Positions 907 to 61,340 of a stretch of 64,000 nt of DNA are shown here, piece after piece. How positions within the stretch are numbered: the stretch's first letter is position 1; each line of letters opens with the position of its first letter. The DNA is taken from positions 88,561,313 through 88,625,312 of the forward strand of contig NC_068990.1 in the NCBI RefSeq assembly GCF_001194135.2, given 5' to 3'. The translations under genes and the position numbers were made by a program. The notes under the pieces were generated by a model. That model did no database searches. It saw only the letters and a program-made list of their open reading frames with translations, and was not told where the DNA came from. Source of the DNA: Octopus bimaculoides (lineage: Eukaryota).

Positions 907-1140
907 CCTCTGATGATCTTTTCACATTTAAAAAAACTTCTATACCAGAGAAGGATACATTAAAACGACTGAAGAACATGAACTTCAAGAACTGTTATGA
1001 AGCTTGTTATAAAAATTCAGAATGTCACTCTTTTGAGTATAATAAAAAAGCTAAGCTCTGTGATCACAGTAATGCAACTCACTTGACTCATGACCTTCAA
1101 CCCAATAAAAAGGGTTGGGATACTTACGTCATTAACCCAG
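907..1140 (+). CDS. Unit 1 exon Ba, PAN/apple type B
   Basis: ttccag|CC...CCAG|gtcagt; 234 nt; SDDLFTFKKTSIPEKDTLKRLKNMNFKNCYEACYKNSECHSFEYNKKAKLCDHSNATHLTHDLQPNKKGWDTYVINP (not in the supplied ORF track). Confidence 0.9.
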
Positions 1141-4100: not shown

Positions 4101-7100
4101 AGAGGAAGACTGACTGAATACATGACTAGTTCCTCAATGTCTGTGGGGGAGAACTAGTTATTTTCAGACCAGGGATCTCACAGACGCTTGCAACAAAGTG
4201 GTAGGGTAAAATTATGTTGATGTCTTATTTTGGTCATGAAATTCAGAAGAGAGAGCCTTGTGAATATAATCACATTTTTTTTTTCATCTCATTGAAAGTA
4301 AAATTTTGATGAATTAAAATTTCTTGACTTGCTACTTGAAGTAGTGAGTGTCCATATTTACTATATATTTATATGATTCACAAGATGGTGATGGAAGGGA
4401 AATGATTTTTGATTTCCAAGACAAACCTTTTCAAAATAGTAAAGTGGTGAGCTACATCCTTTTACATTCTCAGTTCAAATTCAAACAACTATTATAATTC
4501 TGAGGTTGATTTATTTTCATTTATATATTTACTATATATATTTACTACTCAGTGTGTGGCCTTCTATTTGAGTTAGGAACCACTATCATTAATATTGTTA
4601 TCATCAATAATAATTATAATTATTCTTGTTGTTAAGAGTAATAGGTTGACACAATCATCTGAGCATCAGACAAAATGTGTTGTGTTATCTGCTCTGCTTC
4701 TTTAGCTTCAGAGTTCAAATGCTGCTGATATTTTGTCCTCTCAGGACCAATGAAATATGATACTGGTCAGGTGTAGATGCCAATTTCATTGATCAATTCC
4801 TACCTCAAAGTTCTGACTTGTTTTTTATGATGGTAAATTATTATAGTTGTTGTTGATGTTATTGTTTATTGGTTTCAATTTTGTTTTAATTCTAGATCCT
4901 CAGATCCATTTTGTGAAAGTAAAAGGTGCAGCTCTGGATGTGCCAGGGAAATTATTGTGGAAGAAAAAAAATGTAACAGCAAAAGCCTGTGCAGAAAAAT
5001 GTTTGTCAGACAAAAAATGTTTATCATTTGAAATAAATAAAGAAAATGGAAAATGTTTCTTATCAAAGCAAACTGCAAGTTCCTCCAAGAAAATAAAGAA
5101 AGTCAAGAACAAAGATTACTACCAACGAGTAAAATGTAATTATTCTGTAGTATATTCTGCTTGTGTATTCTTGCACTGAGTGGGTGCTACATAATTTCCT
5201 TACATCAATTTGTTTTGAATTAAGAAAAGCGTCCAAACAATAATGATACTCTTTATTGTTTATGTACAATATGTACAATATGTACAATTTAGTCAATCAT
5301 CAATAGAACGTTACACACACAACACTCTTCTGTTTGGTATATATTTTGGTACATTCAAAATAGACTTTTATCATGAACATGTAACAAATGTTCATTAGGA
5401 CAGTCAACAACAATTGAAATATATAACTTGAAACATCTCGAATTTATGAGTTGGTAATTAAACAGCAAAACTAGAGTTGATCAAACACCTGTGAGAAACA
5501 ATCTCACAGAAACTCCAGCAGCAAACAGAGCTGGTCAAGTTCCATGCGTCTGGGACAAGAGCATAGGCGAATTGCTAGTGAAAACACGTCTGCAATGTTC
5601 AACGGCTGAACCTCGAGTCAAAAACGCTAGCGAGAAACGCGATGAAATTTTTTCGCAAGTTTTAAGCACATGCTCTTGAGGGAACTTCTGTAGGCCTTCC
5701 AGAAGATTCTGACCCGCGCATGCATGCTGAAAATTCTCAAAAATGACTTCACTACAATTCTTAGTATTTTATTATAAGAATTATCCTCTCCTCTTCTTCT
5801 GAAATTTGTGATTCCATTTGAATTTCTAGATTACTTACGGACAACTATTTCTGTAAAGACATTGAAGGTTCATCTGTAAAAGAAAAAAAAATATTAAGAA
5901 TTGAAAAAATTCTAAAAAGACATTGTCATACAGCATTTGTTCACCTTGAAAACTTTTATGCATGTTTTCAATTGTATGTTGTGTGCATGCATGCATGCAT
6001 ATGTGCATATCAGAAAGGAAATTCCTGTTCTCTTTCTTAAACCCACATAGTTGTAGTAGTGGTGGTGGCAGTGGTAGAAGCAGTGATTGTGGATTTTCTT
6101 TACCTCTCCATGTTGACATGGCTTTGACAGTACTTTTACAGCACAATGTCTCACTTCTAGTAGCTGTGCTACATAATCTAATATACAGAATAATAGAAAA
6201 AGTAATACCACGCTATGTAGTGCATTTCCTATATTTTCTCATAGTTAATATAGCAAGATACCCTTCCTATCATTTTCCCACAAATATAATTTTTTATTGT
6301 TTGAGGAATTCATTATGATTAGGAGTGTGCTGCAAAGCACTAATTACAACTGATAAAGTGGCAGAGCTGTCATACAGAGCAGAAATAAACAGGATTGGAT
6401 CTGCACACAATTAAAAGAGAGGTGTACAAATATATTATCTGCAGCATAACTATGGAGACAAGGTTTCAAATAAGTCTGAAGATGTTCTACAAATCATATG
6501 CATTCTGAAAATTTATTTATTTGTTTATGATAAATTGACCATTTACAAAATTATGCACCACATGCTTTACAATATTTAACATATGCTAGGAAATGTGTAT
6601 GTATGTGTCCTTGAGTGGGTAGATGCATATGAAATATATTTCTTGTTTTCTATTTTGTTTCAGCTGATGAAGGGCCTGTTATGTTGAAAAAGGTTAGCGT
6701 ACCAAGTAAGGCTACTTTAGGACGGCTTAAGGATAAGACCTTAAAGAAGTGTAAAAATTCTTGTCAACAATATACAGGATGTAACTCTTATCAGTACAAT
6801 GCTGAAGCTAAGTTGTGTGATCTGAGTAATGTGACTCAGTTGAATGATGAACTTAAACCCAACGATGGAAGTTGGGATATATTCTTAACTAACCCAGGTC
6901 AGTAGAGTGTTTCCATTTTATTTATTTTGTGCATGCCTGTGTGTATTATCATACATATGTGTGTGTATACATATCTGCCTCTGTCCTAAATATGCTTCAT
7001 GTTCAGTCTGTTGAAAATTTATACATCATGTCCTTAGTATATTTCCCCCTCATTCCAGTCATGCAGCTTGTTTGTTCACAGTGCACCCACCCATTTCTTC

Positions 7101-7948
7101 CTTCTGTATCAGATACTTTCTTCTTCTTCTTATTTTTTTTTCTCGTCCTCCTCCTCTTTTTTTCTTCTTCCTTCTCCTCCTCCTTGGGAAACTTGTATCA
7201 GAAAACTTTTTCTTTCCTCACCACCCTTCCACTCACACCAACATTTTATTAACAACAGTATTGCAATATAAAAGGCATAGCTAGCATTCTCACCTCAGGA
7301 ATGTGACTCCAGTTGACTAATTAATCAGTATTATTTATATTTCATAAACAATGGTTGTCTACTACACCCTCTTCTGGTAGATGCAGGGGGACAAACTGAT
7401 ATGGTTTACCTGTTGGCAACATCCATACAAACATATTCAGATGCTGAATGCTGTTCACTAACCACCTGTTCCCTCTTGTCATGCATTCCACATCCATAGA
7501 GTTAACACAGTCAATGTAGGCACATTGAAAGTTGGGTCTAGTAGTAAACTTGTCTAAATGCAAGAACAGAGACATGCAGATGTGTGGTGCATTCAAGAAG
7601 TAAGGTGGAGGGAACTTCAGCCAGGTTCATCTCAGGCAAAGAACGTAAGTGTAAAATATTCTGGGTAGATAATGGTGGTAGGCTAAATGGTGTAAGCATA
7701 TTTCTAGATGAAAACTAAATGGATAAAGTGATCAAAATAGTTAGAATGTGTGATAGGATACATATGCTTAGACTAGTTTTGCCAAGTAGTACAGCAACTG
7801 TACTACATTGTTGTTGGAGAGAAGTGTGTTCAGATGGATGGATACACTTGCACTTAGTGATTCTACAAGGAAAGAGTTTTCGGTCAGCCAATCTGTGACA
7901 AAATTAGAGAAATAAGTGACTGTGTGATAAACTTGAAAAAATTAATAT

Positions 7949-7982
<34 letters not shown>

Positions 7983-10900
7983 NNNNNNNNNNNNNNNNNN
8001 NNNNNNNNNNNNNNNNNNNNNNNNNNNNNNNNNNNNNNNNNNNNNNNNNNNNNNNNNNNNNNNNNNNNNNNNNNNNNNNNNNNNNNNNNNNNNNNNNNNN
8101 NNNNNNNNNNNNNNNNNNNNNNNNNNNNNNNNNNNNNNNNNNNNNNNNNNNNNNNNNNNNNNNNNNNNNNNNNNNNNNNNNNNNNNNNNNNNNNNNNNNN
8201 NNNNNNNNNNNNNNNNNNNNNNNNNNNNNNNNNNNNNNNNNNNNNNNNNNNNNNNNNNNNNNNNNNNNNNNNNNNNNNNNNNNNNNNNNNNNNNNNNNNN
8301 NNNNNNNNNNNNNNNNNNNNNNNNNNNNNNNNNNNNNNNNNNNNNNNNNNNNNNNNNNNNNNNNNNNNNNNNNNNNNNNNNNNNNNNNNNNNNNNNNNNN
8401 NNNNNNNNNNNNNNNNNNNNNNNNNNNNNNNNNNNNNNNNNNNNNNNNNNNNNNNNNNNNNNNNNNNNNNNNNNNNNNNNNNNNNNNNNNNNNNNNNNNN
8501 NNNNNNNNNNNNNNNNNNNNNNNNNNNNNNNNNNNNNNNNNNNNNNNNNNNNNNNNNNNNNNNNNNNTATATATATATATATTAATGGCAATGGAAGCAA
8601 CTCTAACAGAAATAGCAATAGTATCATAACTAATGATAATGCTAAGAATGGTAACAATGATACCATTGACAACAGCCACTAACAATGCAGACAGAATGGT
8701 CTAGCTCTGGAGAAGATTATGGGATTGATTAATAAATGTGATAATTGTATTTGGGAACTATGATTCTACAACCTCATCAGAAACATGCATAAGCTAGCTG
8801 GAATAAATTATGTGAATATCCATCATCTTTGTACCTTTTCTGTTATGCTCTGTAACTGTTGTATATACCAATTTTCCTTGGTGACTAAGCTTTTCACCAG
8901 GATCCTTAAGGATCACTTCCTTTCATGTGATATCTGTATGTCTGTATGCGTGTGCAAATGTCTTCAGTTTGTTATACAGTCAATATCTTTTATTCTAGAT
9001 TTGTCCTTATCTCCTCATTCTCCCCCTCCTCCTCCTGCCATAGATTCACTATTGATATCAGTTTCTCTTATCACTTCCAGTTGTTACAAAAGTTAACTGT
9101 GGACCTCCAAAGGATGTTGTTGGTGCAAAGAAGTCCTACACTGACACCACCTATAAATCTGAAGTGACCTACACATGTCCAGGAGGACAACAGTTGAAGT
9201 CAAAGTGTAAAGATGACAATAAATGGACTCCAGTTGCATCCAATTGTGAAGGTAATGTAAATAGGTTCTCTCTTGTTGTCTCTGTCTATGTATTTTTGTT
9301 TAAATTTTTATTAAATATCTTTGTCAGAAGAAGAATGTCTGTATCCATGACAATTTCTATGGAATTTGTGGCTGGTTGAAGGGAGAGCGAGAGCTATCCT
9401 CAGACCAGAAAACTTTCCAAATTCATGCAACTGAGCAGACTTGCATAAGCTATCCATGGATGAGGTAATGGTATTAATTTGAGTGATGGATTAAGTTTAC
9501 CATCCAAGAACATCAAGTGAGGAAGTGTGTTCTCTCCAGCAGGCTTCAGCATAGTTTCCATTCATTAAATTTCATTCCCAATCCTTAGTCATGAAGCAGA
9601 TTGGGTAGCATCAACAATAATTATTTATGCTGGTGATGGATTGAGAAAATCATCAGAACATCAGACAAAACATTTCTGGCTCTTTTCCATGGCCAATAAA
9701 ATAAAATACCAGTCAAGTGTAAGGCCCACTTTAATCAGTCACTTCCGACCTCAAATGTTTGTCCTTTTTTTATGTTAGAAATTTTTGTTTTTGGTGTTTA
9801 CAATTGTCTAAATCTTATTTTAATTCCAGTTTCTAAGATCCATTTTGTGAAAGTAAAAGGTGCAGTTCTGGATGTACCTGGGAAAACTTTGGCGAGTAAT
9901 AAAAGTGTAACAGCAGATGTTTGTGCAGAAAGATGTTTGTCTGACAAAAATTGTTTATCATTTGAAATAACTGAAGAAACTGGAAAATGTTATTTATCAA
10001 AGGAATCTGCAGCTTTTTCCAAGAAAATAAAAGCAGCCAAAAGCAGAGATTACTACCAACGAGTAAATCGTAATTATTCTTTGTGTTTTTCTTTTCCACT
10101 AATTTTGAAATTTGTGATTCCATTTCTACTTTGTGATGCAGTTTTCTCTTATAGAATATCTACTTTTAAGTGGGGATAAATATTATATCTTGATATTAAT
10201 ACTGCCTCTGTCACTAATATGTATTTTTCAACAAGCTAACTGGCTAATCATGACACCAGCACATGTTCTCACACTGTGATTCTATATATTGCTGGTGAAG
10301 AGATGAATTGCAGCTACCTGTAGCAGTCAAGTGTCCAACATTGACAAGATCAAAGAAGGTTGAAATTACATGATCCAGTGATTTCGGTGCTGAACATAAC
10401 AAGGATTTATCTCGCCACTAGCGATATAAACAAGAGTGCATTTTGCACCAAAATTCCAGTATGACTATCTCTCATGGTAACTACTTCGGTAGATGTTACT
10501 TTAGACTTTAAGTCAGACATTACACAAAGAATACTCCATGAAAAACTTAAGAAGTAGAACAGAAGACTTCATGGGAATTTCATCTTCTACTTCCAAGCTA
10601 TAATATCAAATTCACTAGCAAGTATTACTGAAAAAATCTCCAATTTAGCCACAAATCTTTTATCTTCTATCTTTTAGCTGTTTCAGTCATTTGATTGTTG
10701 AGGCAACACCTTGAAGTATTTTAGTTGAACAAATCAACTCTAAGATTTATTTTTTGAAGCCAAGTACTTATTCTATCAGTCTCTTTTACTAAACTGCTAA
10801 GTTACAGCATTTCTCTGCATAATCACTCTTCTCAAAATGCATACGCAGTGTATTATATCATAAGACATACTTGGAAGCTCACCTCATTGTTTAAGTTGTA

Positions 10901-12294
10901 CATAAATTATATGTACACCCTTCTTCTGTTGGTGTGCTTTTCTTTAAGATTAAATGGTTCTAACAACACTTGACACATTGGCTAAACACCTGTTGATCAG
11001 CACTTAGACAATACTAAATTAATCAATTAGAAAAAGATATACAAATGATACACACATTTTGAAAGAAGGTTTCAAATGAGTATGAAGATGGGCTAAAACT
11101 CACATGAATTCCAAGTTGTCATTTTGTGGATCAATTATTTGTTTATAATAAATTGTCCATTTAAATTAAATTATGCACCAGATGCTATATAATGTTTAAT
11201 GTGTGTGTGTATGGGATTATGAAATGTAATTCTCATTTACTTTCTTTTTTTATCTAGCCAATAAAGATATTTTAAAATTTAAAAGAACTTCCATACCAAG
11301 AGAAGATGCATTTAAACGGCAGGAAAATATGACCTTAAAGGAGTGTGACCATGCTTGTCATCAAACTCCAGGATGTAATTCTTATGAGTATGATAAGAAA
11401 GCTAAGTTCTGTGATCAAAGTAATGCAACTCACTTGACTCATGACCTTCAACCAGATCAAAAGGATTGGGATATTTACGTCATTAACCCAGGTCAGTAGA
11501 GTGTTTTCATTTTATTTTATTATGCATGTACTTGCATGTAACTGCGTGTTTGTGTGTATTATTTACACATACATACATGTGTTTGTGCAATATATATATA
11601 GAGGCAATTATATATTTATATAGAGGCAATTATGTAAATAAACAAATTAGACAGATTAAATATATTAAATATCTATTATAGTAAAAGCAAAATTTTGTCT
11701 GTCTGGGACCCTTGTATCTCAGTCTACATTTGCTCTACAAAGACATATTATACCTTTTGGAATCAGAATGATCCCAGGATTGAAAATCTGCCCTTCATTT
11801 GGTTCTTGAACATCCAGTATTGGGATCTGATTTAAAAACATTTGGATTACTACTTCTTGCAGGTAAATATCTTTGTCTTTAAGGTATTTGTACGTTCTCC
11901 CTACAACATTACTTTACTTATTTAAAATTTTTGGCACTCCATCTATTTAAATACACTATTTACATTTCTCCCTCTATGCTTGAGAAGAGTTGTTAAGCCA
12001 AGTGATATCATAGCTATGGATGATGCTGGTGTCACGTAACTGGCATCCCTGCTTGTGGCACATAAAAAGCCAAATAAGACTGGCGCAGCCTTCCAGCTTG
12101 CCAGCCCTGGTAAAACCATCCAACCCATACCAGCATGAAAAATGGACGTTAAATGATGATGAAGATTACACAGTTCACTCTGATTACCAATTAATCAGAT
12201 TAATCCAGTTAGCTAAGCGGTGTTATCACAGAATGATCAAAAAAGAATTTGACTGGATTTTACCATCATGTGTTGAGAGAGAGAGAGAGAGAGA

Positions 12295-12341
<47 letters not shown>

Positions 12342-15300
12342 NNNNNNNNNNNNNNNNNNNNNNNNNNNNNNNNNNNNNNNNNNNNNNNNNNNNNNNNNNN
12401 NNNNNNNNNNNNNNNNNNNNNNNNNNNNNNNNNNNNNNNNNNNNNNNNNNNNNNNNNNNNNNNNNNNNNNNNNNNNNNNNNNNNNNNNNNNNNNNNNNNN
12501 NNNNNNNNNNNNNNNNNNNNNNNNTGTGTGTGTGTGTGTGTGTGTGTATTTGTATTTGTATCTATGTGCAAATTACTTCAATTCGGTTCACTGAATATCT
12601 TTTGTCTTAAATGTGTCATTATCTCCTCATTTTCACCCTCTTCCTGACACATACTCACAAATGATATCAATTTCTCTTTTCAATTTCAGCTTTCGCAAAT
12701 ATTAACTGCGGGCTTCCCAAAGATATTGTTGGTACATCAAAGTCCTACAAAACCACTGCATATAAATCTGAAGTACTCTATACTTGCTCAGATGGAGTAC
12801 AACTAAAGTCAATATGTCAAAAAGACAACAAATGGACTCCAGTAACGTCTTCTTGTAAAGGTAACATAAATAGCTTCTCTCCTGTTGTCTCTCTTTAAGT
12901 AATTTTCTTAAATTATTGTGTTAAATGTCTTCACCAAAAGAAGACTGGCTGATTCCATTATTATTTCCAGTGTTTGCAGCTGGTGAGAAGGAGAGGGAAG
13001 TTATCTTCAGACCAGAGACTTCTCCAAATACTTGCAATGTAGTGGATTCCATTGATATTACCATAGAGCCTGATAATACTATTAAATTGAGTGATGGATT
13101 AAGTTTGCTGACCAAGAAATTGAAGTCTAGAGACTTATCACCAGTTAGCTTCCAAAATGTTTCCATCCATTAATTTTCATCCACAATGTTAATATATATG
13201 TTACAGTAGGAAACATTCATATTAACCCAGAGTTGCTCAGGCTGGGCAAGAACCACTTTAATCTCACATATTTAGGAGAGAAGATGACCTGAGAAATTCA
13301 TGGCTAAATGGTTTCTGCCATGGATAGCTTATTAAAACATATAAATATTTTCGAATTGTAATCAATTATGTATTCTTTTGTTCATGACTAAACATAATTA
13401 GAGAAAGAGATTGTGATATTCATGTCTTTCTCAAGGGCACTAAATGTCTATGTAACATGAACTGATCATTGACTCACACCACTCAATCCAAATTTATACT
13501 AAAAGAACAACTATGGAAAAATACTCAGAGTTACTTCCTCTATGGAAAACAAATAGTAAAATAAAGATATTGTGATCAACTGTAATTTTACCGTGATTGA
13601 TCATTAAAATGGATAGTCTAATAAATAAATTCAGAAGAGACAACCTTATAAATATGAATTGCCTTTTTCTTCCTATCACTGAAAGTTTAAGTTTGGTGAA
13701 TTTACTACATATTCATATTTACTACATATTCATATTTATTTACTAGATGAAGATGATAGTCAAATCATTTTAGTTTTCCAAGACAAAACACTATAAAATC
13801 AGTAGAGCGACTAGCCATATTTAGTTATGTACTTTTACATTCTAGGCTCAAATCCCACCAAGATGTACTTCACTTTTCATACTTCTGAGATTGATTAAAC
13901 AAGCACTATTCAAGAACAGAGGTTGATAATTTTTTGTGTATCCTCCCTGCAGGATCTGTAGCCTTGTGTTTAAGTTAGGAACCATTATCATTAATATTGG
14001 AGACTTCAACAATGATTATGATTATTCTTGATAATAAGGGTAATGTATTGACAGAATCATTCAAGCATCAGACAAAATATGTTGTGGTATTTGTTCTGGC
14101 AATTTTATTTCTTAGTTTAAATCTCGTTGATGTGAACTTTGCCCATTTTAAGTTAATAAAATAAGACATCAGTCAAGTGTAGGGACTAATTTAATTGACC
14201 AGTACTTACCTAAAGATTTGGCTTACTTTTTATGTTAGAAATTATTGTAATTGTTGTTATTTTTCATTAGCCTAAATTTTGCTTTAACTTTAGATCCTCA
14301 GCTCCATTTTGTGAAAATAAAAGATGCTGCTCTGGATGTACCTGGGAAAACATTGTTGGATAAGGAAGATGTAACAGCAGATGAATGTGCAGAAAAATGT
14401 CTGTCTGATGAAAGCTGTTTATCATTTGAAATAAATAAAAAAAATAGAAAATGTTACTTATCAGAGAAATCTGCAGCTACCTCCAAGAAATTAAAGGCAG
14501 ACAAAGACAAAGATTACTACCATCGATTAAAGCGTAATTATTCTTTGTATTTTATTATTGGAATTCTCTTTTCCATTATTTCTGAAATTTGTGATTCCAT
14601 TTGTACTTTCAAACCATATAGACCCCAATTTCTGTAAAGACATTAACAGGTTTACCTATAAGGCCAGATATACACACATTCTAGAAATAAGCAATATTAA
14701 GAAATGTAAATACTGTTAAGATATTCTCATACAACTTTTATTCACCTTGAACAAGATTTTGCAACCTTCATTCTCAGTGAATCTTTCTGGTATTTGGTCA
14801 TACCACGTTTTTGGTCTTTATGGGCCATAATTTCCACAAAGCTCCCAATGTATCATTCTTGCCACATAGTTATGTCCTTTGTATTTGCATTGGGCTAATT
14901 TCAGGCTTTCACTAACAATGCACCGTATTGTTTAACCCTCTCACTACACATTCTGCATTTGTCACTTTCAGTTGTGTTGTCAGTTCTGTACTTCACATTG
15001 TTTGTCCTCAATGCTTGTTCTAGTGCCATGCATATGAGTGCTTTGGTTTCTATCTTCTGGTCACTCCTCCACATCCAGAACAACTGGTCTTCTGTAACTG
15101 TCTTCGAGGAATTTGTATATTTTGCAAACTGACTATACATTTTGCCCCATGCTATTTCATTTTCTTCTTTTTTTTTTGTATTCTTTTCCTCTTTATGTTT
15201 CTTCCTTTACACTATTATCACTTTTGATGATGCCAAACTTCACATATTTCAGCAATGGTTTTATTGCATTTTTTACATACCACCCCAAGAGTTGTTTTCC

Positions 15301-21300: not shown

Positions 21301-24300
21301 CTGCATTTGTTCATTATTATTATTGATATGGCAGTTTGACCAAGGGAGCCCAACAGAGTAAGAACCAGATTTAAAAATGGGTACTGGATTCAGTTTATGT
21401 GTGTGTAACATAATCCCAAATTTAAAAGAGTGGGATAGGTAATATGTAAGCTACATACATTTCTTAACTAGCTGAAGTTCATTACGTAAGTATTATGTAA
21501 CAAACTATTTACTTATATAAATTGGAAGACAACACACTAGAAGTCCACTGCAATCTATACTTAACATTTTTTAAAAAGACTTTTAATGCCTGAATACATA
21601 CCCCCTTATTCTCCAGAATGACACCAATTTTTTCTTTTCTCTTTCCATTCCTTTTCTTTCTCCTTTTCTTCCTACTCTTTGACCCTTAACCACACCCACT
21701 CTATCCATTATTTCAGTTCCACCTTACACCAAAACATTCAGTGCTTTTTTAAACTTGCTTTCTTTGTTTTGTTTTGTTTTTTGTTATTGACTTTACTATC
21801 CATTTAGAATTCCTCAGCAATGCAAATTTCACTGAGAACCTTTGAATGTCATATATTGAATAGTTTCTCTCAGACAGCACCTGGGAAACAAAAGCAACAA
21901 GAATAAATACATAAACCTAGTACTGAAAAGCAAAGAGAACAGTATCATGTATCTCAGCAGTGATCTCTGCAAGAAGCAATCTCTTCATAACCCAAAAGAA
22001 TCTGACTAACATACTTCAAAGAAGTCCCAGATGTGAAGCACACAGCACACCAAAAAAAAAAAAGGCTATGCTTGTGTGTATTTCTTGAAGACTTAAAGAA
22101 GACAGAAATATTGACATGAAATGCAGCCTTCTTGGACTCATGACCACTACATAATGTCACACTTCAAAGCTTATTTGTTTGCTATATGTACTGAATACAC
22201 CTCTATCCAAAGGCTGTATGGCCCTCATAAGACATTCATCTCTTAGCTTGCTTAGTGACTATAAAATCAAAGAGCATGTGACCATGATTAAGGCTTTCTC
22301 TAAGTTGATCAATGCTAAATAACATCACACTTCGAAGCCAAGAGAAGGTGATTGATACAAAATACCCAATAAATAAAAGAAGCAGGGAAGCCATTGGAAA
22401 CTCAACGTGCAACAAGACATGTCAATTATGTCATATTTCTGTGGAAAACATCACAAATCTGATCAACAATTAACCAAAAATGTCAACAATGTACTATTTC
22501 CTAATGTGACATGATGTTGTAACTAACACAATATATAATGCTATCTGAAAACAAGAATGTTCCTGGATGACTACTGAGGATCCCTCTATAATCAAATATA
22601 TGCACAAGCATCAATACAAGGAGAATTGCTGGAACATTACCTTCAAAATTTCTAGCAAACTAGATAGTGCTGTTTGAGAGGGATAAGAAAAAGCATGTAC
22701 AGTTATAGACATCAGCTGCCTCACTCGTGAACATCTCTTCAAAAAATTAAAGCGAAAGTGAATAACTATGAACAACTGGTTTGAAACTTCAGCTTTTATA
22801 CCTATCCTGACTACAAATTCACATTTATACCATTCATAACTGGTGCAATTGGTCTTGTGAATAAATGCCTACATGAGATTCTAGATGAGTTACAGTTTTC
22901 AGAAGAAAGAAATCAACCAGCTAATACACATGTTACAAATATAATCTGGAAGTGGAACAGTGAAAATATGCAAGACGTTCATAAAGTTCAGAATATAAAT
23001 TTGTTTTCATCTCCATTCCAACAATGGAGCTTTGTATGTTCCTAGGAACCAGCTTCTTCCTTACAGGAAGTCTTCACATAATTAAGAATAGTAGAAAACT
23101 ACAAATATACACGTGTTTCTATGTGTGAGCAAATTTCTTCTATTTGATTCATGCAATATGTTTTATTCTAACATTGTTATTATCTCCTTATTGTCACCCT
23201 TCTCCTAACATGTACACATCATTGATATCAATTTTTGTTTTCAATTCCAGTTTACAGCAAAATAAAATGTGGACGACCAAGAGACATTGCTGGTGTATTG
23301 ATGTCCTACAATTCCACCACCTATAGATCTGAAGTGACCTACACATGTCCAGACAGAGAAGAACTGAAGTCAAAATGTGAAAAGGACCGAAAATGGACTT
23401 CAGTAGACTCTGTTTGTGAAGGTAAGGCAAATAGCTTCCTTCTTGCGGTTTCTGTCTATGTAATTTTGTTTCACCTTGTGCTAAATGTCTTAGTCAGAGG
23501 AGGGCTGGCTCACTCTATAGCAATTTCCACAGTGATTGTGGATGGTAGGAGGGAGAAAGGAAGCTGTCCTCAGATCAGGGAACTCATCAAACAGAGTAGA
23601 CATCATTTATTCTACCCAAGGGCCAGGTATTAAATTGGATGATGGATTAAGTCTGCCAGCCAAATAGGATAAGTGTGGAAGTTTCTTCCCCCAGCAAGTT
23701 TCCACGTAACTTTCATCTACCAAATTTCGTCCTCAGTTGTAGAGCAAATTTTTAACCAAAAAACCAAGACTAGTAACTCTTCCATGTTGAAAGAACAAGC
23801 TGTTCAGCATGAGTACCAATATCTTATCACCAAAAATGCTGTGGTGAGAATTGTACATATTGGGTATAAGAACAGTATTACCCAAATAAATATTTGGATA
23901 CAGTTATCTAGAATAACCCTTCATAGAATTATTGATGAATAACCCTTCATACATACATACAGTGTGGGATATATAACACACTGCCTAGGTGCCAAGCTTG
24001 GGAAATTAGGCTTCTCAAAACCAGAAACGAGAAAGCTGATTCAAAGACAACAGATCCAATCCATCACTGGAACTGTAAAAATTTGTAAAACTTTTCAGAA
24101 GTTTATCATTTAAGTATATATGAGAATGTCTAGATATGGAACTATATGCATGAGATTGTACACATAAAACAAAACATACAAGTCTGCACATATACATACA
24201 TACCCTACTGTTGATGTTGAAATTCCAATGAAGGAATTTTTAATCAAGCAGTTATACATTCAGAATATCTTCCTTCACTGCTAATTAGGTCACCCATGTA

Positions 24301-25540
24301 ACAGACACTGTCTACAACTTTTAGGGAGTCTCCTGAAAAATCCAATTCCTGTGCGTTCTTAATGTTTATTGTTCCTGCACATCTGACACTTAAAAAGACC
24401 ATTTTCTCTGTTAAACTACCTGTAATTACACTGCACTTCTGATGTGTGCATATCTTACACTGAGTACACCATATGGAATTCCAACCAACACCTACTTATT
24501 TAGCAGGGCACACACATAAAATAGATGCAACATAGATGTCAATTTCTGTTTTCAATTTCAGTTTTTAAACACATTGACTGTGGAAATCCAAAAGACATTG
24601 CTGGTGCAACAAAGTCCTATGACACCACCACCTATAAATCTGAAGTGACCTATACTTGCCCAGAGGGAGAAAAACTAAAGTCAACATGTGAAAAGGACAA
24701 CAAATGGACTCCAATTGTGGAAACCTGTAACGGTAACATAAGTAGCTTCTTTCTTGTGCAATTTTGTTTTAGTTTTGTGTTAAATGTGTTTGTCATAGGA
24801 AGACTGACTGAATACATTGCAAGTTCCTCAGTGGTTGTGGTTGTTGGTGGGGGAGAACTAGTTATCCTCAGACCAGAGATCTCACAAATGCTTACAACAA
24901 TGTGGACATAGTCAATTCCACTCAAGGCCAGGTAATGGTATTAAACTGGATGATGGATTAAGTCCACCAACCAAGAGCTGGAACTATGGACAGTTTTTTC
25001 TCTCTTACTCTCTTCCACATTGTTCACATCCACCAAATTTCTTCTTCAAGTCTTAGCTGTGAAGTGAATTTTTAACCATGCAGAAATAACTCTACCTTAT
25101 ACCTTATGTTTGACAAGTAAACTTATTACTTCCATAGCTATACTACAGCACATTTTGATAGATTTTCTCTTAACTTCTAACAGGAAATTTCTTTGCCATA
25201 CTTTGTGCTATCATCCAGAACTCTGTAAATATAATGTCTGAGTTTTTCTTTACTAGAATGTAGCAATCCCCTGATACAGACTTCTGATGCCCTTGTTATC
25301 TTTCAGTCAACTACCTATAATTATACTACTACTAATAACAACAATGGTTTCTGATTTAGGCACAAAGCAGTAGTTTTTAATGGATTGCATTTAGCCAAAA
25401 CCATGACCATTGCTAATTGCCTGGCACATTGTTTTATTCAACCGCGCAAGATTGAAAGCTCTTGGTTTAATTTGAACTGATGGACAAAAGAGCCTGATTA
25501 CTTATTGTAATGCATTTCTTGTAATACTCTAATTAGTACC

Positions 25541-25576
<36 letters not shown>

Positions 25577-28500
25577 AATGAACAACATTATCATTATTAA
25601 CATCATTATTTAGCACCTGTTTTCTATGCTGGCATGGGTTGGACAGTTTGATAGTGTCCAGTGAACTGAAGAGCTGCATTAAGCCCAATGTTATCTTTGA
25701 CATGGTTTCAATGGCTGAATACCATTCCTCAGACTAACCACTATAGAGTGTGTACTGGGTCCCTTTCCTTGGTACTAGTAAGGTCACCAATAACTTGCAG
25801 GACAAAATTAAAAAAAGGGAAAGCAAAAAGACCCCTCAGCTGAGTGAGAGTGTATTTGAGAGAGTGGGAGGTAGATTTGTGCCATGTATTTAAGGCTAAG
25901 GTATGATAGAGTGACAAGCATAGGTATCTTACTATAGAGGAGATACACAGCTACTCTATATTACATGCTGATGGGTAAGAGCAGGAGTGTCAAACTTAAT
26001 CACACATGGGACCAAAACTCAAAGCACACTTTAGGTCGCAGGCCGAACATGATAAACATCTATTGAACAGACTAAAACTTTATGAACATGAACATGTATT
26101 GAAACAGATGGTATATAATTTTATTCCAAAAGTAAATTAACTTTAATTTAAATTACTTAAAATATTTTACTCTGCATGAAAATATCTTTTGTCAAAATTA
26201 TAAAAATTTAAAATAAGAATAAGTTGCAAAAAAAAACAAAAAGAAAATATAAATAAAATATGTGCTTCTTAGTGAAAATTAAAATAATAAATCAAAACTT
26301 TCAATTTTCTTTACCCAATTCTGTCCAAGCTACATACTTGGCATCTTTTCTTGGCAACATGTTCATTGATGTTTGGGGCAAGGTTCTGTGTTGTTGAGAC
26401 TCTTGGGATGGATTGCAAGTGTTCATCTGTGAGATGACTCCTATGTGACGTTTTATTCATCTTCATCACAGAGAACAGCTGTTAGCACAGATATGTGCTT
26501 CCAAACAAAACAGCGTTCAAGCTACATGTAAATGGAGCTGGGGCATTGCTTTGGGTATGAAGCAAGTGAACTGTACGGGTCCCACAGTGTCATACTTTGT
26601 TTTTAATGTCCCATTACACTGCAGTTCTATCAGCTCCATTTGAATCTGTACAAGTGCAGTTTCCACATTCACAGCAAATGGGTTGCGAAGCAGCTTGAAA
26701 TTATTTTTCCTTGCTTCAAAGTCACTAAAGCACCATGAGAATTCAGTGTGAAGCACTCTCAATTTGTCTGCAAAGTGTTGCTTTGGGAACACCGTAGCAC
26801 TGACTTGGCTCAACATTACTTGGCAACAGGGAAAGTGAGACAAATCTTTGAAAAACATTGGATGGACGAAATGAAAATGTGTCTAGTTTTAAGAACACTA
26901 GTGACAGCAGAGCATGAGAAGTATAGTAACTTCATACTGCCAAAAGAAGTATCCAACATAAATTTCACCAACACAGTTCACATTTTGGTTGTGAAATTCA
27001 GAAAAGAAAGCCTTGTGAAGGTAATCACTTACTTTTTTTCATCTCATTAAAAGTAAAATCACTAGATGATGATGGATGCTATTCCAAGCAAAACTTTGCT
27101 AAATAGTAAAGTGGTAAGTTACATCCTTTTACATTCTCAGTTCAAATCCAAACAAGATGTGCTTCAGCTTTTATAATTCTGAGTTTGATAAAACAGGTAT
27201 TAGTCAAGTTCTGAGGTTGATTTATTTTCATTTATATTTACTGCTCAATGTGTGGCCTTGATTATGTGTTAGGAACCATTATCATTAATATTGTTACCAT
27301 CAATAATAATTATAATTATTTTTGTTGTTAAGGGTAATAGGTTGACATAATCATTTGAGCCTCAGACACACTGTGTTGTAGCATTTGTTCTGGTTCATTA
27401 GCTTCAGAGTTCAAATGCTGCTGATGTTAACTTTACTCTTCCAGGGCCAATGAAATATGATACTAATCAAATGTAGAAGGAAATTTCATTCATCAATTCC
27501 TACGTCAGTTTTGTCTTAATTTCTATGATGGAATATCATTTATTTTGTTGTAGGTGTTATTGTTTATTGGTTTCAATTTTGTTTTAATTCTAGATCCTCA
27601 GATCCATTTTGTGAAAGTAAAAGGTGCAGCTCTTGATGTACCAGGGAAATTATTGTGGAAGAAAAAAAAAGTAACAGCAAAAGCCTGTGCAGAAAAATGT
27701 TTGTCAGACAAAAAATGTTTATCATTTGAAATAAATACAGAAAATGGAAAATGTTTCTTATCAAAGCAAACTGCAAGTTCCTCCAAGAAAATAAAGAAAG
27801 TCAAGAACAAAGATTACTACCAACGAGTAAAATGTAATTATTCTTAGTATTTTATTAATGAAATTATCCTCTTCTCTTCTTCTGAAATTTGGGATTGCAT
27901 TTGAATTTCTTGGATGTCACATTCATTGAAAGCATGTGAAATAACATGGAAAAGAAAAAAAAACCTACGAAACAAAACTCCATTGCTGGAAAACTCACAC
28001 TCCCTCAGTGAGCCAACAGGTCATGGGTACTCTAGTAATATAATATAAATATATAAACAAAATCACAAATGTAAATGTTTCCTAACTTTCATCTAATTTG
28101 GTTTTACATTCAGATTAATTGCTATTTTTTTTTTTCTTTATTTCAGTTGTTTTTCCACAGATGTATATTTTTATTATGTTTGAGAAATTTATTATGATTA
28201 GGAGTGTGCTGCAAAGCACCAATTACAACTGATGAAGTGACTGAGCTGCAGTGTAGAGCAGAAATAAACAGGATTGGATCTGCGCACAATTAAAAGAGAG
28301 GTGTACAAATGTATTATCTGCAGCCTTACTATAGAGACAAAGTTTCAAATAAGTCCGAAGATGTTCTACAAATCATATGCATTCTGATTAGAGTGTCCTT
28401 TTGCAGATCAATTATTTGTTTATAATAAATTGGCCATTTACAAAATTATGCACCACATGCTTTACAAAATTTAACATATTGTTAGGAAATGTGTGTGCGT

Positions 28501-31500
28501 GTGCTTGAGTGGGTAGATGTATATGAAATATATTTCTTGTTTTCTATTTTGTTTCAGTAGATGAAGAGCCTGTAATGCTGAAAAAGGTTAGCATACCAAG
28601 TAACGCTATTTCAGGACGGCTTAAGGATAAGACCTTAAAGGAGTGTGATAAGGCTTGTCAACAATATATAAGATGTAACACTTATCAGTACAATGCTAAA
28701 TCTAAGGTGTGTGATCTGAGTAATGTGACTCAGTTGAATGATGAACTTAAACCCAACGATGGAGATTGGGATATATACATAGTTAACCCAGGTCAGTAGA
28801 GTGTTTCTATTTCATTTATTGTGTGCATACCTGTATGTATTTACATATACATGTATGTGTGTACGTGTGCATATACATATATACATATCTATCTCTCTAT
28901 TTATCTAAATATGTATATACATACACTTATATGTATGTATATAGATATATATATATATATAAGAAAAACCATTTTGTAATTGAATATACTGATGCTATAT
29001 CATCATCATCATCGTTTAATCTAGGAGCTCCAACAAAACCTGTGATAAAGAGAAATAATAATAGTAGAAAGAGGATGCAGAGTATATGGATGGGAAAGCA
29101 TGGCTCAGATATTAAGGAACAGATGTGTGGCAGCAGAAATGAAAGTCTCACATATTGTGAGAGTGTAGTAGGCTGGCCCAAAAGCACTACAAATGGAGGC
29201 ACAGTAATGTGGCTATATTCTTCTATTGGAGGCTATGTGAAAAGTACAGCCTGAACAGAACACGGAAATGATATGGACATGAACCAGAAGGAGTGACTGA
29301 GAACAAGGAGCATAAGATACTGTGGGATTTTACATTCTGAGAAGTAAAGCAATAATAATGATGATAATAATAATAATAATAATGATAAAGGTGAAAGCCT
29401 TTTGAGTGGCAGGTGTCCTGTGGTTGAGCAGCGGAGGCCTGGTCATTATCCAGAGACTGCTTATATATGAAGTCAGAGGCAGAGAAGAAGATGGGATGAA
29501 AAGGTAAACCAAACTGTTATTGAATGCTGAATCAGAAGTGAACCCAGTAGAAGGGGGATTCCAACAATGCATGAAAGCAAAATGAAGTAGGACTCTTCAA
29601 GATAAGTGAGCAATGTTTAGCCTACCACACAAGTGCAATAAGAACAAAAGTGTGGTTAACAGACATGGAAATTCAAGAGGTAAAAAGGAAAGTAGAAATA
29701 GTAATAATACTTCACCGGCAGATAACATGCCCAATGAGGACAGAGAAATGAATGGCATTAGTGAAGACATAGAGCAAAGTGTAAATATAAATGCACTCTC
29801 AGCAAATGAAGCAGAAGTAATGGGAAGAGCTATATCACAAGAATACGATGATGAGCAACAAGACATTTTGAGGATGATGTGCCGATATATTAGAGAAGGC
29901 CAGGATCAAGCAACCCCCAAACTGAGGTATATTGATCAACACAAACCAGTAGCTGAAGCCAAAAGGATAGATTCTGAAACTAACAAGATTACTTAAGCTG
30001 CAACTATGGCTGCTGCAGATAGAGTTGGATACAAAAGAAGAGAGCAGACAGAAGGTAAAGAACCGCACTGGCGTAGACAAATTTGTGAGAAAGACAAGAA
30101 AGTTCCTAATGATGCATGAGGCCCATCATTCATGTGCAGACACTGATCACCTACACACAAAGAGAATAAACAGCAGAAGGGGACTGATAAGTGTGGAAGA
30201 CTACATAACTATCGAACTCAAGAGCTTAACGAGATACCTATCCCAAAGTAAGGAAACTTTGTTAGTGTCAGTTAGGAATGAGGATGTATTGAAAGCAGAG
30301 AAAAAAGGGAAAGCAAACGAAGAAGTACAAAAAGGACATGAAGATGCAGTATGCAACAAGGGACTACAAAACCAATTCCATGTAGCCACAACTGAAGTTG
30401 CTGGAAACATAGGTGGGATTGGCTGAAGAAAGGGACACCAAAAAAAAGTATGGATTATCTGGTTTTCTAAATCTATCACAGCCCAATTTTGTTAGCCTAG
30501 TTTCATTTTCTTCATGGAGCTTACAAGATATTTCACCAGGCTCCTTAACCATTTCCTTTCATGTGATATATGTATGTCTGTATGTGTGTGCAGATGTCTT
30601 CAGTTTGTTATACAATCAATATCTTTTATTCTAGATTTGTCCTTATCTCCTCATTCTCCCCCTCCTCCTCCTGACATAGATTCACCGTTGATATCAGTTT
30701 TTATTATCACTTTCAGTTATTACAAAAATTAACTGTGGACCTCCAAAAGATGTTGTTGGTGCAAAGAAGTCCTACACTGACACCACCTATAAATCTGAAG
30801 TGACCTACACATGTCCAGGAGGACAACAGTTGAAGTCAAAGTGTAAAGATGACAATAAATGGACTCCAGTTGCATCCAATTGTAAAGGTAATGTAAATAG
30901 GTTCTCTTTTGCTGTCTCTGTCTAGGTATTTTTGCTTAATTCTTTTATTAAATATCTTTATTAGAAGAAGAATAACTGAATCCATGACAATTTCCATGGT
31001 ATTTGTGGCTGGTTGAAGTGAGAGAGAAAGTTATCCTCAGAGAAGATAACTTCCTAAATCCATGCAACAGAGTGAACTTAATTAAAGCTATCCAGGGCTC
31101 AGATAATGGTATTAATTTGGGTAATAGATTAAAACTGCCAAACAAGAGCAGCAAGTGAGAAAGTGTGTTGTCTCCAGCAGGCTTCTACATAGTTTCCATC
31201 CACCAAATTCCATTAGTCATGAAGCAGTTTTTTAATTATGCAGCCATAAGTCCAGACAATACCGCATTCTTGTTATTACCTCAGCTAACCAAGGTAGTTT
31301 TTCTCTTAAATTCTAACTTCAGCTTTCTTTCACACTTTGTTTCATCCTCTGAAACACTGCACAACACAATGCACTTAATTTTTCTTTACTAGAATTCAAC
31401 AATCATCCAAAACTTCTGATACTCTAATGGTCATCCATTCCACCATCCTAAATCATAGTGAGATAAATAATAATACTGATTTCTGATGGAAAAAGAGCCA

Positions 31501-44862: not shown

Positions 44863-44927
<65 letters not shown>

Positions 44928-50497: not shown

Positions 50498-50535
<38 letters not shown>

Positions 50536-61277: not shown

Positions 61278-61340
<63 letters not shown>

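Follow-up and report, generated by a model that had tools for sequence, protein, structure and literature searches.

Amino-acid change at or above the neutral pace in the newest copies of a PAN exon from a tandemly repeated octopod gene

Introduction

In gene models of Octopus bimaculoides, exons encoding a B-type PAN domain, a Sushi domain and an A-type PAN domain are spliced in that order, along an array that spans about 570 kb and has a GON domain at its end. The gene family is uncharacterised and known only as predicted Octopus proteins. The window, i.e. the whole 64-kb stretch of DNA analysed here, shows the same splicing order and comes from the interior of a very large octopod gene, predicted to encode a secreted-type mosaic protein in which PAN(B)-Sushi-PAN(A) triads recur. 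Among the most recent copies of one PAN exon in this locus, amino-acid replacement proceeds at about the pace of neutral DNA or exceeds it, a pattern suggestive of selection for diversity on about one third of the PAN domain.

Results and Discussion

Each domain is encoded by a single symmetric exon, and the 37 exons of the window, all on the forward strand, are in phase 1-1 with AG/GT splice sites (one donor falls inside an N gap). They form a block of 13 exons and four triads (Ba-S-S-A, Bb-S-A, Bc-S-A and Bd-S-A), about 22-24 kb long and present in at least three tandem copies. As laid out by self-BLAST and tblastn, unit 1 covers 907-20836, where every exon is AG..GT and in phase 1-1, and unit 2, with the same 13-exon order, covers 20837-44538; unit 3 (44539-64000) is incomplete and its final 5 kb or so looks mis-scaffolded. 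Spliced together, the 26 exons of units 1 and 2 encode 1830 amino acids with zero stops. Pfam PAN_1 and Sushi matches exceed the curated cut-offs, with PAN_1 scores of 29.6 bits for Bb1 and 43 bits for the PAN-A exon class to which Aa1 belongs.

The Sushi exons, Sa1 being a Pfam Sushi match, are Sa1 (3023-3193), Sx1 (3855-4025, the second Sushi of triad a), Sb1 (9081-9251), Sc1 (12690-12860) and Sd1 (17443-17610, 168 nt) in unit 1; Sa2 (23251-23421), Sx2 (24562-24732), Sb2 (30717-30887), Sc2 (35743-35913) and Sd2 (41720-41887) in unit 2; and Sa3 (45691-45861), Sx3 (47424-47594), Sb3 (51158-51328), Sc3 (58710-58880) and Sd3 (61465-61632, outside the expected order) in unit 3. The PAN-A exons are Aa1 (4896-5135, a PAN_1 match), Ab1 (9830-10069), Ac1 (14294-14533) and Ad1 (19268-19504, shorter by one codon); Aa2 (27594-27833), Ab2 (33356-33595), Ac2 (37672-37911) and Ad2 (42927-43166); and Aa3 (49432-49671), Ab3 (52217-52456) and a misplaced exon of Ac type (62078-62317), the donor of which lies inside the N gap.

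The window carries 11 N-gaps, exact duplicates beside gaps (49533-49715 is identical to 49726-49908, and 60079-60451 to 63278-63650) and, at 59-64 kb, a scrambled exon order (Sc3, gap, Sd3, Ac-like, Bd3). One could thus imagine that what look like paralogues are wrongly assembled haplotypes, or error-rich contigs from a gap-rich draft, and that their differences are not true paralogous substitutions. We regard this as very improbable: exons and introns alike diverge between units by 10-30%, and introns also differ in length, far above allelic variation or sequencing error, yet reading frames and splice sites stay intact through all these differences, and the exons compared come from contiguous stretches well away from the suspect 59-64 kb region. 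They consist entirely of uninterrupted read bases, touched by neither of the two intron gaps nearby (7983-8567, between Bb1 and Sb1, and 12342-12524, between Bc1 and Sc1), and their reading frame is set by splicing, independently of the gaps. The intron ends beside the unit-1 exons run colinear with their counterparts in units 2 and 3 (6898-6970 corresponds to 28792-28864, and 8892-9080 to 30531-30716), and units 2 and 3 hold no extra exon at the places matching the two gaps.

The exons are functional coding sequence. All 37 have open frames and keep every cysteine, which, together with their splice sites, shows that they are not decaying; no stop codon occurs in any of them (P ~1e-11 under neutral change), and indel openings number 1.5 per kb in exons versus 11.7 in the flanking introns. 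The Sb exons differ by only 1-4 nt among units, even though the HSPs around them, which consist mostly of intron, have diverged by about 12-13%. Among the PAN-B exons, the four cysteines that the sequence-only reading had described as fixed (codons 29, 33, 39 and 51) are indeed invariant in 11 of 11. The CDLSNVTQL core, also described as fixed, is identical, almost to the nucleotide, in Bb1-3 and Bd1-2, but it differs in the Bc and Ba exons.

That reading had also drawn attention to an excess of amino-acid-changing differences between two PAN-B exons, Bb1 (6664-6897, codon k starting at 6666+3(k-1)) and Bb2 (28558-28791), each of 234 nt, AG...GT, in phase 1-1 and with 77 complete codons. Our recount reproduces its figures exactly, 19 amino-acid-changing and 2 purely silent codons (24 nucleotide differences in 21 codons). 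Since about 80% of sites are nonsynonymous, neutrality predicts roughly 4:1, and 22:2 was observed. The pair alone is nevertheless not significant (p=0.08-0.18): NG86 gives dN/dS=2.81 (S=45, N=186, Fisher p=0.18) and maximum likelihood an omega of 3.24 (LRT against omega=1 of 3.02, p=0.08), and among 34 within-family exon pairs none is more extreme. Bd1 (15839-16072) and Bd2 (40039-40272), of the sister family of Bb, differ by 18 amino-acid-changing and 0 purely silent codons, with no outgroup to polarise them; Bd3 (63927-64000) is truncated by the window end. The second example put forward, Bc2 (35198-35431) against Bc3 (56223-56456), was correctly counted at 12 changed and 5 silent codons but goes in the opposite direction, with omega at 0.34-0.37, and omega is also under 1 for Bc1 (11258-11491) against Bc3.

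The copies in the window are recent, as judged from sequence divergence. Bb1, Bb2 and Bb3 (50203-50436) form a clade, sister to the O. bimaculoides orthologue o87845, and dS among the paralogues is 0.05-0.10 versus a pS of 0.25-0.29 to the orthologue. Divergence is asymmetric: Bb1 has stayed near the orthologue (86% amino-acid identity; 15 nonsynonymous differences, against 22 to Bb2) and Bb2 is accelerated, with 12 unique amino-acid changes versus 2 in Bb1 (p=0.013). Likewise, Bc1 is accelerated, with 13 unique changes versus 1 in the conserved Bc3 (p=0.002).

Selection was assessed on pooled sets of 5-6 short paralogous exons (77 codons) from one draft assembly, with our own maximum likelihood code rather than PAML or HyPhy. 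With the O. bimaculoides orthologue as outgroup, a two-ratio branch model gives omega_recent=2.33 versus omega_old=0.60 (p=0.01) and, on the pooled recent paralogue branches, rejects omega_recent=1 (p=0.021); the ratio of nonsynonymous to synonymous changes is 22:2 on recent branches versus 8.5:10 when the stem and the orthologue are taken together (Fisher p=0.002). Site models on Bb and Bd place 36-40% of codons at omega 3-6 with LRTs of 21-28: M2a against M1a gives 24.2 (GY94) and 28.5 (MG94), M8 against M7 26.1 and M8 against M8a 24.2, and adding the orthologue leaves an LRT of 20.9. The maximum LRT in null simulations under M1a was 7.0 (n=40). Correction for codon and AT bias, which the sequence-only reading had named as a possible source of the excess, raises omega instead of lowering it. 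No selection signal was detected in the Bc+Ba, Aa+Ac and Sb+Sd clades.

A rival and rather unlikely explanation is that purifying selection has only been relaxed: the extra PAN-B exons would be redundant and their non-fold positions would drift at omega ~1, the scaffold being kept because a misfolded module harms the whole protein, and values above 1 would be sampling noise from very few synonymous changes. The single-pair tests are non-significant, as this would have it, and the asymmetric acceleration fits a redundant copy. Measured against the intron rate, omega for the whole exon is only 0.99-1.08, so that an exon-wide omega above 1 hinges on very few synonymous changes (13.8 in the five-exon tree); pS over all exon pairs (~0.12) is near the intron mismatch fraction (0.128), which suggests that dS in Bb and Bd is low by chance. 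Omega in PAN-A and Sushi exons is also high, at 0.7-1.2, indicating that much of the pattern is a locus-wide weakness of constraint. However, M1a, which already permits any fraction of neutral sites, is rejected even when more than 570 intron columns largely set the neutral rate: in fits that treat introns as a neutral partition, LRTs are 21.6-26.5 and 36% of codons are at omega 3.3-3.5. Six codons each took 4-5 replacements in a five-exon tree with only ~0.3 synonymous changes per synonymous site; beyond the rejection of omega_recent=1, a dual-rate test with class-specific synonymous rates also speaks against relaxation alone (LRT 8.4, p=0.004; bootstrap null maximum 3.6, n=57). Thus, the proposal that dN/dS exceeds 1 for Bb holds in the pooled branch and site models, but neither in the single pair nor for the whole exon against introns.

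The array shows clear gene conversion or segmental exchange. Only 1 nt separates Ba2 (20837-21070) from Ba3 (44539-44772), Ac2 from the Ac-type exon of unit 3, and Sb1 from Sb3, whereas Ba1 (907-1140) differs from Ba2 by 69 nt, or 30%; the closest units vary by exon (2 and 3 for Ba, 1 and 2 for Aa, 1 and 3 for Sb). Ba1 is a mosaic that changes its tree position between exon halves, the first grouping with Ba/Bc exons and the second with Bc1. Short tracts from other B exons, within or beyond the window, may have brought in clustered differences and homogenised the rest, synonymous sites included, so that codon models would take the replacements for parallel ones on a background of low dS. Over codons 39-68, the Bb and Bd families have nearly identical nucleotides, and Bb2 has Y-I-V and R38 in common with Bd exons: its ATA-GTT (codons 74-75) occurs in Bd1 and Bd2 alike, its AGA (codon 38) in Bd2 only. 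The variable codons also carry more synonymous changes per site than the rest (0.65 versus 0.17), which hints at mutational or conversion input. PHI gives p=0.04 at a single window size when all B exons are taken together, and 0.004-0.02 for Sushi exons; inside Bb+Bd, the set tested, it is not significant (p=0.88), and the two clades have bootstraps of 100% and 98% and a topology unchanged between exon halves. Recombination-like label swaps inflated false positives to 13%, but the null LRT reached at most 11.8 in 79 simulations, as compared to 24-28 observed. Bb1 and Bb2 show 3 double-hit codons where random scatter expects ~3.6, and the donor families stand at omega 0.5-0.8 against Bb, such that imported tracts should bring many silent changes too. 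As the source of the signal, conversion or multi-nucleotide change thus appears improbable.

We consider it somewhat probable that recent tandem copying of the block was followed by diversification of a PAN-B binding face, through relaxed constraint combined with positive selection on a subset of positions. Tandem copying of the 13-exon, four-triad block, at least three times over, would postdate the split from the O. bimaculoides lineage; one PAN-B copy would then stay near the ancestral sequence (Bb1, Bc3) while its sisters (Bb2, Bb3, Bc1, Bc2) gather amino-acid replacements. These replacements fall on some 22-28 codons, which a structural model of moderate confidence places in the N-terminal strands and loops, the non-cysteine positions of the helix, the post-helix loop and the beta3-beta4 hairpin. 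None of them touches the N-x-T glycosylation sequon, the four disulphide cysteines or the hydrophobic core. Redundant PAN modules may in this way diversify their putative binding faces, with constraint relaxed at every non-scaffold position and positive, diversifying selection acting on a subset, and the PAN modules along the array may come to differ in putative ligand specificity. An arms race in immunity or gamete recognition, as brought up by the sequence-only reading, is a hypothetical setting for such change.

The AlphaFold2 model of Bb1 (moderate confidence, pLDDT 72) has the order beta-beta-alpha-beta-beta-beta, and its variable sites lie in loops, at alternate strand positions and at helix positions not occupied by the two cysteines. 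These sites are also where 22 O. bimaculoides B exons vary most (entropy 2.10 versus 1.37), as would be seen if they were simply the least constrained. In a Foldseek search with the Bb1 model, the top PDB matches were all PAN/apple modules.

Architecture of the exon array

Six-frame translation, tblastn and self-BLAST of the 64-kb window (G+C about 34%, 11 N runs) reveal 37 complete exons and one cut exon, all on the plus strand and of three kinds: B exons of 234 nt encoding a PAN domain (PAN-B), S exons of 171 or 168 nt encoding a Sushi/CCP domain, and A exons of 240 or 237 nt encoding a second PAN type (PAN-A). Every exon carries one domain, is in phase 1-1 and is flanked by an acceptor AG and a donor GT, bar one whose donor sits within an N gap. 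The exons follow each other in B-S-(S)-A triads, and four distinct triads (a to d) make up a higher-order unit of 13 exons and about 22-24 kb, of which the window contains 2.7 copies (907-20836, 20837-44538 and 44539 to the end of the window); the families Ba, Bb, Bc and Bd agree with those named in the sequence-only reading, and a trailing digit gives the repeat unit. The 26 spliced exons of units 1 and 2 encode 1830 residues with zero stops, and the array runs past the 3' end of the window within exon Bd3. The repeated B-S-(S)-A order on one strand, as in LOC106869402 and its relatives, is found both in the window and in the O. bimaculoides loci.

The two N-gaps between Bb1 and Bb2 (7983-8567 and 12342-12524) are intronic, the intron ends adjoining the neighbouring exons align colinearly with those of the other units, and no exon occurs at the matching places in the other units of the window; the gaps therefore affect neither the comparison of these exons nor the frame. 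The intron after Bc3 holds an open frame (56796-57104, plus strand) with weak helix-turn-helix matches, one of them to the Sleeping Beauty transposase HTH domain with a score well under the cut-off; from its sequence, this frame is probably a transposon remnant.

Codon evolution of the PAN-B exons

Recounting the exons Bb1 (6664-6897) and Bb2 (28558-28791), each of 77 complete codons, gives 24 nucleotide differences across 21 codons, 19 changed and 2 purely silent, precisely the counts that the sequence-only reading had taken to point to a dN/dS above 1. The counts are real and the pooled tests favour the same direction, but the inference from one pair was too strong. With 45 synonymous and 186 nonsynonymous sites, the replacement:silent ratio of 22:2 is to be set against about 4:1 under neutrality. 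The NG86 dN/dS of 2.81 has a Fisher p of 0.18, and the GY94 maximum-likelihood omega (dN/dS) of 3.24 (kappa 3.5) gives a likelihood-ratio test (LRT) against omega = 1 of 3.02 (p = 0.08), cruder codon-frequency models giving p = 0.048 and 0.024. As this pair is also the most extreme among 34 within-family exon pairs, we do not accept it as proof of selection. Because about four-fifths of sites are nonsynonymous, simply counting changed and silent codons makes the evidence look stronger than it is, a caution that applies to sequence scanning in general. AT or codon bias can be discarded as the cause, since F3x4, F1x4, equal-frequency and MG94 models all give an omega at or above the NG86 value. 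The pair put forward as a second example, Bc2 (35198-35431) and Bc3 (56223-56456), does show 12 changed and 5 silent codons, but its omega of 0.34-0.37 is nominally below 1 (p = 0.03) and runs contrary to the claim. The unit-1 versus unit-2 pairs Bc1-Bc2 (omega 2.2) and Bd1-Bd2 (omega 2.8; 18 replacement codons, 0 purely silent) lean like Bb1-Bb2.

Over the whole exon, Bb1 and Bb2 diverge at 24 of 231 sites, the same level as in their upstream intron (38 of 383 sites, and 30 of 300 in the partly overlapping stretch 6273-6573; proportion of differing sites about 0.10). Forced global alignment of 400-nt flanks reached non-homologous sequence and (TG)n runs in several pairs, so that only clearly homologous intron columns were used thereafter.

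Bb1-3 and Bd1-2 form a clade (neighbour-joining bootstrap 100/100/98, with the same topology from both exon halves) whose M0 omega is 1.83. In this clade, neutral models are rejected by M2a versus M1a (LRT 24.2 with GY94-F3x4, 28.5 with MG94), by the M7 versus M8 comparison that had been proposed as a check (26.1) and by M8 versus M8a (24.2), the site models placing about 36-40% of codons at omega 3-6. The likelihood code was our own, not PAML or HyPhy; it behaves as it should on simulated nulls, and its results match those of counting methods. In M1a simulations the LRT had a 95th percentile of 3.7 and a maximum of 7.0 (n = 40), and under the fitted M1a the M0 omega was never above 1.12.

Because the exon has few synonymous sites, homologous intron columns were added as a neutral HKY partition with common branch lengths. 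The whole-exon omega of the Bb and Bd clade then drops to 0.99-1.08, while the site-model LRT comes to 21.6 when 117 flank columns are used and to 26.5 when about 570 are, 36% of codons lying at omega 3.3-3.5. The result thus depends on the neutral yardstick, with synonymous sites giving an exon-wide omega of 1.8-2.3 and introns one of about 1.0. An exon-wide value above 1 hinges on about 14 synonymous changes, and pS over all exon pairs (about 0.12) is near the intron mismatch fraction (0.128), which is why we prefer the intron-anchored estimate as safer, with an omega of about 1 for the exon as a whole and values above 1 in a subset of codons. Codons with a posterior above 0.9 are 3, 5, 12, 14, 15, 17, 18, 20, 22, 24, 25, 30, 31, 34, 37, 38, 46, 47, 48, 50, 69 and 75.

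The 11 B exons together give omega 1.10 (M2a LRT 11.5, p = 0.003), and PAN-A is intermediate (all A exons: omega 1.17, LRT 5.7; Ab and Ad clade: LRT 9.5, p = 0.009). All S exons together give omega 0.71 and an LRT of 10.9, and the clades Bc+Ba, Aa+Ac, Sb+Sd and Sa+Sx+Sc show no site-model signal.

Polarisation by an outgroup favours an acceleration after duplication. Among 22 B exons taken from four O. bimaculoides loci, o87845 (a B exon from the CM046610.1 loci) is sister to the window Bb clade and a clear orthologue (86% amino-acid identity). Its comparison with Bb1 (pS 0.25, pN 0.08, ratio 0.32) is, on the sequences compared, one of ordinary purifying selection. Bb1 nevertheless has 15 replacement differences from o87845 and 22 from Bb2, though dS to Bb2 is five times smaller, and relative-rate counts assign 2 unique amino-acid changes to Bb1 versus 12 to Bb2 (p = 0.013), and 1 to Bc3 versus 13 to Bc1 (p = 0.002). 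A two-ratio branch model gives omega 2.33 for post-duplication versus 0.60 for older branches (LRT 6.65, p = 0.01), and M2a versus M1a with o87845 included gives an LRT of 20.9. The Bc copies are asymmetric in the way the Bb copies are: Bc3 is near o82699, another B exon of those loci (pN/pS 0.33), and Bc1 (0.71) and Bc2 (0.57) are accelerated. Since the conserved Bb copy belongs to unit 1 and the conserved Bc copy to unit 3, none of the units can be singled out as "the functional one".

Together, the pooled, outgroup-polarised and site-heterogeneous analyses favour a genuine acceleration that followed a recent tandem duplication and in which one class of PAN-B codons outpaces neutral change. 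We lean, by a modest measure, towards diversifying selection on a subset of PAN-B codons as its cause. Pure relaxation of constraint is a possible but doubtful account: the intron-anchored exon-wide omega near 1 agrees with it, but fixing the recent-branch omega at 1 worsens the fit (LRT 5.34, p = 0.021).

Constraint, conversion and assembly

Pseudo-exons or outright decay can be rejected. Frames and splice sites are intact, and no exon contains a stop codon, which would have a probability of about 1e-11 were the roughly 555 inferred substitutions neutral. Indel openings amount to 1.5/kb in exons versus 11.7/kb in flanking introns, a six-fold deficit, and exon lengths differ by whole codons only. 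The neighbouring Sushi exon is also near-invariant: the Sb exons (9081-9251, 30717-30887 and 51158-51328) differ by 1-4 nt, 0-1 of these synonymous. Intact exons next to a near-invariant Sushi domain imply that the fast change of Bb is domain-specific and not a decay of the whole unit. The HSPs holding the Sb exons consist mostly of intron and have diverged by about 12-13%, and the PAN-B exon lying some 2 kb upstream by about 10%; the near-identity of Sb reflects either very strong constraint or exon-limited conversion.

Conversion or a mutational artefact would be an unlikely source of the PAN-B pattern, although conversion is evident elsewhere in the array. Ba1 is a mosaic exon, differing from Ba2 by 69 nt (30%), and Bb2 has Y-I-V (codons 73-75) as in the Bd exons and, as in Bd2, R38. 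The closest pair of units varies from exon to exon (Ba2/Ba3, Ac2/Ac3 and Sb1/Sb3 differ by 1 nt each, Aa1/Aa2 by 4 nt), a patchwork that points to gene conversion or repeated segmental exchange. The PHI test gives p = 0.88 on the Bb and Bd set and mixed p-values over the other exon sets, with little power at 165-240 nt. Simulations with recombination-like segment label swaps raised the LRT to a 95th percentile of 6.9 and a maximum of 11.8 (n = 79), below the values observed. Synonymous changes are enriched in variable codons (0.65 vs 0.17 per site). The harshest test gave the fast class its own synonymous rate, the null being a neutral class at an 11.7-fold rate and the alternative an omega of 3.2 for 35% of codons; it still returned an LRT of 8.4 (p = 0.004), the parametric bootstrap null reaching at most 3.6 (57 replicates). 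Many B exons are flanked on both sides, at no more than about 60-100 nt, by (TG)n/(CA)n microsatellites (e.g. 6570-6600, 6935-6970, 44864-44925 and 50470-50530), at which homology between the units is lost; these may be recombination or conversion boundaries.

Between 59000 and 64000 the exon order is impossible (Sc3, gap, Sd3, an Ac-type PAN-A exon, then Bd3), and segment pairs of 100% identity lie beside N-gaps (49533-49715 vs 49726-49908; 60079-60451 vs 63278-63650). From the sequence, the final 5 kb or so of the window looks mis-scaffolded, with contigs mis-ordered or duplicated. An assembly artefact is, however, a scarcely credible explanation of the PAN-B pattern: this part lies outside the compared exons.

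Domain identity and predicted structure

Against the PAN profile (PF00024; cut-off 21.4 bits, the Pfam gathering score) the B exon scores 29.6 bits and the A exon 43.3 bits; the Sushi profile (PF00084; gathering score 20.7 bits) is matched at 24.4 bits, and the C...C...C...W...C pattern is seen in 15/15 S exons. The PAN-B core is C-x3-C-x5-C-x11-C with a two-cysteine helix, and its cysteines (C29, C33, C39 and C51), candidate disulphides whose pairing is predicted, are invariant in 11/11 window B exons, with zero entropy in the 22 O. bimaculoides B exons; the sequence-only reading had described all four as fixed when it compared Bb1 with Bb2. The CDLSNVTQL core, described at the same time as fixed, is so in the five Bb and Bd exons and only there. 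S54, N55 and T57 are invariant in 11/11 B exons, as is the N-x-T sequon (NVT/NAT/NET) of codons 55-57 (e.g. 6828-6836 in Bb1), a motif that would fit a secreted glycoprotein.

The AlphaFold2 model of Bb1 (pLDDT 72; elements E5-7, E17-22, H26-35, E41-45, E50-54 and E70-74) has a predicted beta-beta-alpha-beta-beta-beta fold, which is the PAN order, an antiparallel sheet with one packed helix. Its top Foldseek PDB matches (2yil, 1nk1 and 4dur) have TM scores of 0.58-0.69 with an E of only 0.03, and the leading ones are all PAN/apple modules (SML-2 lectin, HGF N domain, plasminogen and MIC4). Such modules, which bind proteins or carbohydrates, include the HGF N domain, plasminogen PAp, the apple domains of prekallikrein and factor XI, apicomplexan MIC4, the Sarcocystis lectin SML-2 and leech antiplatelet protein. 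The window exons resemble them in HMM match, cysteine core and predicted fold, but identity to solved PAN modules is just 14-20%, and true apple domains have six cysteines where PAN-B has four.

On the Bb1 model the candidate codons map to strand 1, the loop preceding strand 2, strand 2 itself (positions 17/18/20/22), the helix (30/31/34, between and beside the invariant C29 and C33), the post-helix loop and the 46-48 hairpin. Such a placement is to be expected of a binding face, and we regard it as a candidate face on the predicted structure. In the O. bimaculoides B exons, too, variability is highest at these positions (p = 3e-4), a pattern compatible with low constraint as well as with recurrent diversification.

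SVEP1 is defined by vWA, EGF-like, pentraxin and HYR domains alongside Sushi repeats. Profile searches of the window, of the 4470-aa O. vulgaris model and of the O. bimaculoides homologue found no vWA, EGF or pentraxin match; PAN and Sushi were found in the window and the O. vulgaris model, with a GON domain in addition in LOC106869402, and for the remaining short matches (MBD, SH3_3, Get5_N and Nup188_N) no stretch passes alone. The SVEP1 identity, a pipeline name, is thus unjustified. The GON domain is seen only in the O. bimaculoides homologue, the window stopping short of the 3' end of the gene. The O. bimaculoides array terminates in it (E = 1.2e-34) like the GON proteins ADAMTS9/20 and C. 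elegans GON-1 (PF08685), but, unlike in these, no metalloprotease or thrombospondin repeats were found.

Relatives in other octopus sequences

A whole triad is matched only by predicted, uncharacterised proteins of O. bimaculoides (LOC128248837, LOC128248838, LOC128248840, LOC106869402 and LOC106869390), O. sinensis (LOC118764741 and LOC118764742, XP_036361601) and O. vulgaris (CAI9728790, 4470 aa, auto-named "SVEP1-like") at 50-61% identity, and, distantly, by one Sepia protein. The Octopus PAN-Sushi-PAN proteins have in common with the window the B-S-A triad order and one domain per phase 1-1 exon. The homologous O. bimaculoides array lies on one strand of chromosome CM046610.1 (88.248-88.826 Mb, about 570 kb). 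DNA identity between this locus and the window is 70-80%, the introns adjoining exons are still 70-80% identical between the window and its O. bimaculoides relatives, and no protein or DNA match close to 100% was found among the predicted Octopus relatives. The three-fold 13-exon higher-order repeat of the window appears lineage-specific. In the annotation the CM046610.1 array is broken into six or more gene models (709-4083 aa). Several of them begin mid-domain, and the GON domain occurs in the last one only; together they may be one giant gene. The gene directly downstream is CACHD1-like. A PAN-Sushi-PAN giant gene is apparently restricted to cephalopods, and literature searches on the octopus PAN/Sushi family, its LOC genes, and PAN domains with tandem exon duplication returned nothing relevant.

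Possible meaning for recognition

If diversifying selection does act on these codons, a giant, uncharacterised gene (about 570 kb in O. bimaculoides, with dozens of PAN and Sushi modules) becomes a candidate recognition molecule whose binding surfaces would become different in one copy after another once exon blocks had been duplicated in tandem. The immune or gamete-recognition arms race named in the sequence-only reading would be a hypothetical setting for such selection. The locus would then offer a natural experiment, conserved and accelerated copies of one module lying 22 kb apart in one genome, with about 22 codons listed as candidates for ligand specificity.

By analogy with arthropod Dscam and abalone VERL, the array could be a PAN-built, repertoire-generating recognition locus with a role in non-self or gamete recognition, a reading that we hold to be quite improbable. 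Tandem duplication and diversifying selection, possibly with variable exon inclusion, would in that case put many PAN specificities on one giant secreted protein. As every exon is in phase 1-1, any subset of exons can splice in frame; against this reading, the available gene models include consecutive exons constitutively.

In VERL and other reproductive or recognition repeat proteins of molluscs, some repeats are homogenised by concerted evolution and others diverge under positive selection. VERL, the abalone egg receptor, reportedly consists of a binding domain repeated in tandem (Galindo, Vacquier and Swanson, 2003). The octopus array resembles it as a large extracellular tandem-repeat protein with both homogenised and diverging repeats, an analogy of process and not of membership: VERL has ZP-N domains, a known partner (lysin) and a known tissue, whereas the octopus array is built of PAN and Sushi domains and is known from sequence alone.

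The fold matches also include the Brassica S-locus receptor kinase ectodomain and Plasmodium AMA1 (6kyw and 4r1c). Both are recognition proteins that contain PAN domains and bear hypervariable surface patches under positive selection. They have in common with the octopus exons a PAN fold used as a recognition surface (putative here), variation in loops and a fixed disulphide scaffold. Their variation is allelic and under balancing or immune selection, whereas that of the octopus lies between tandem exon copies in one genome.
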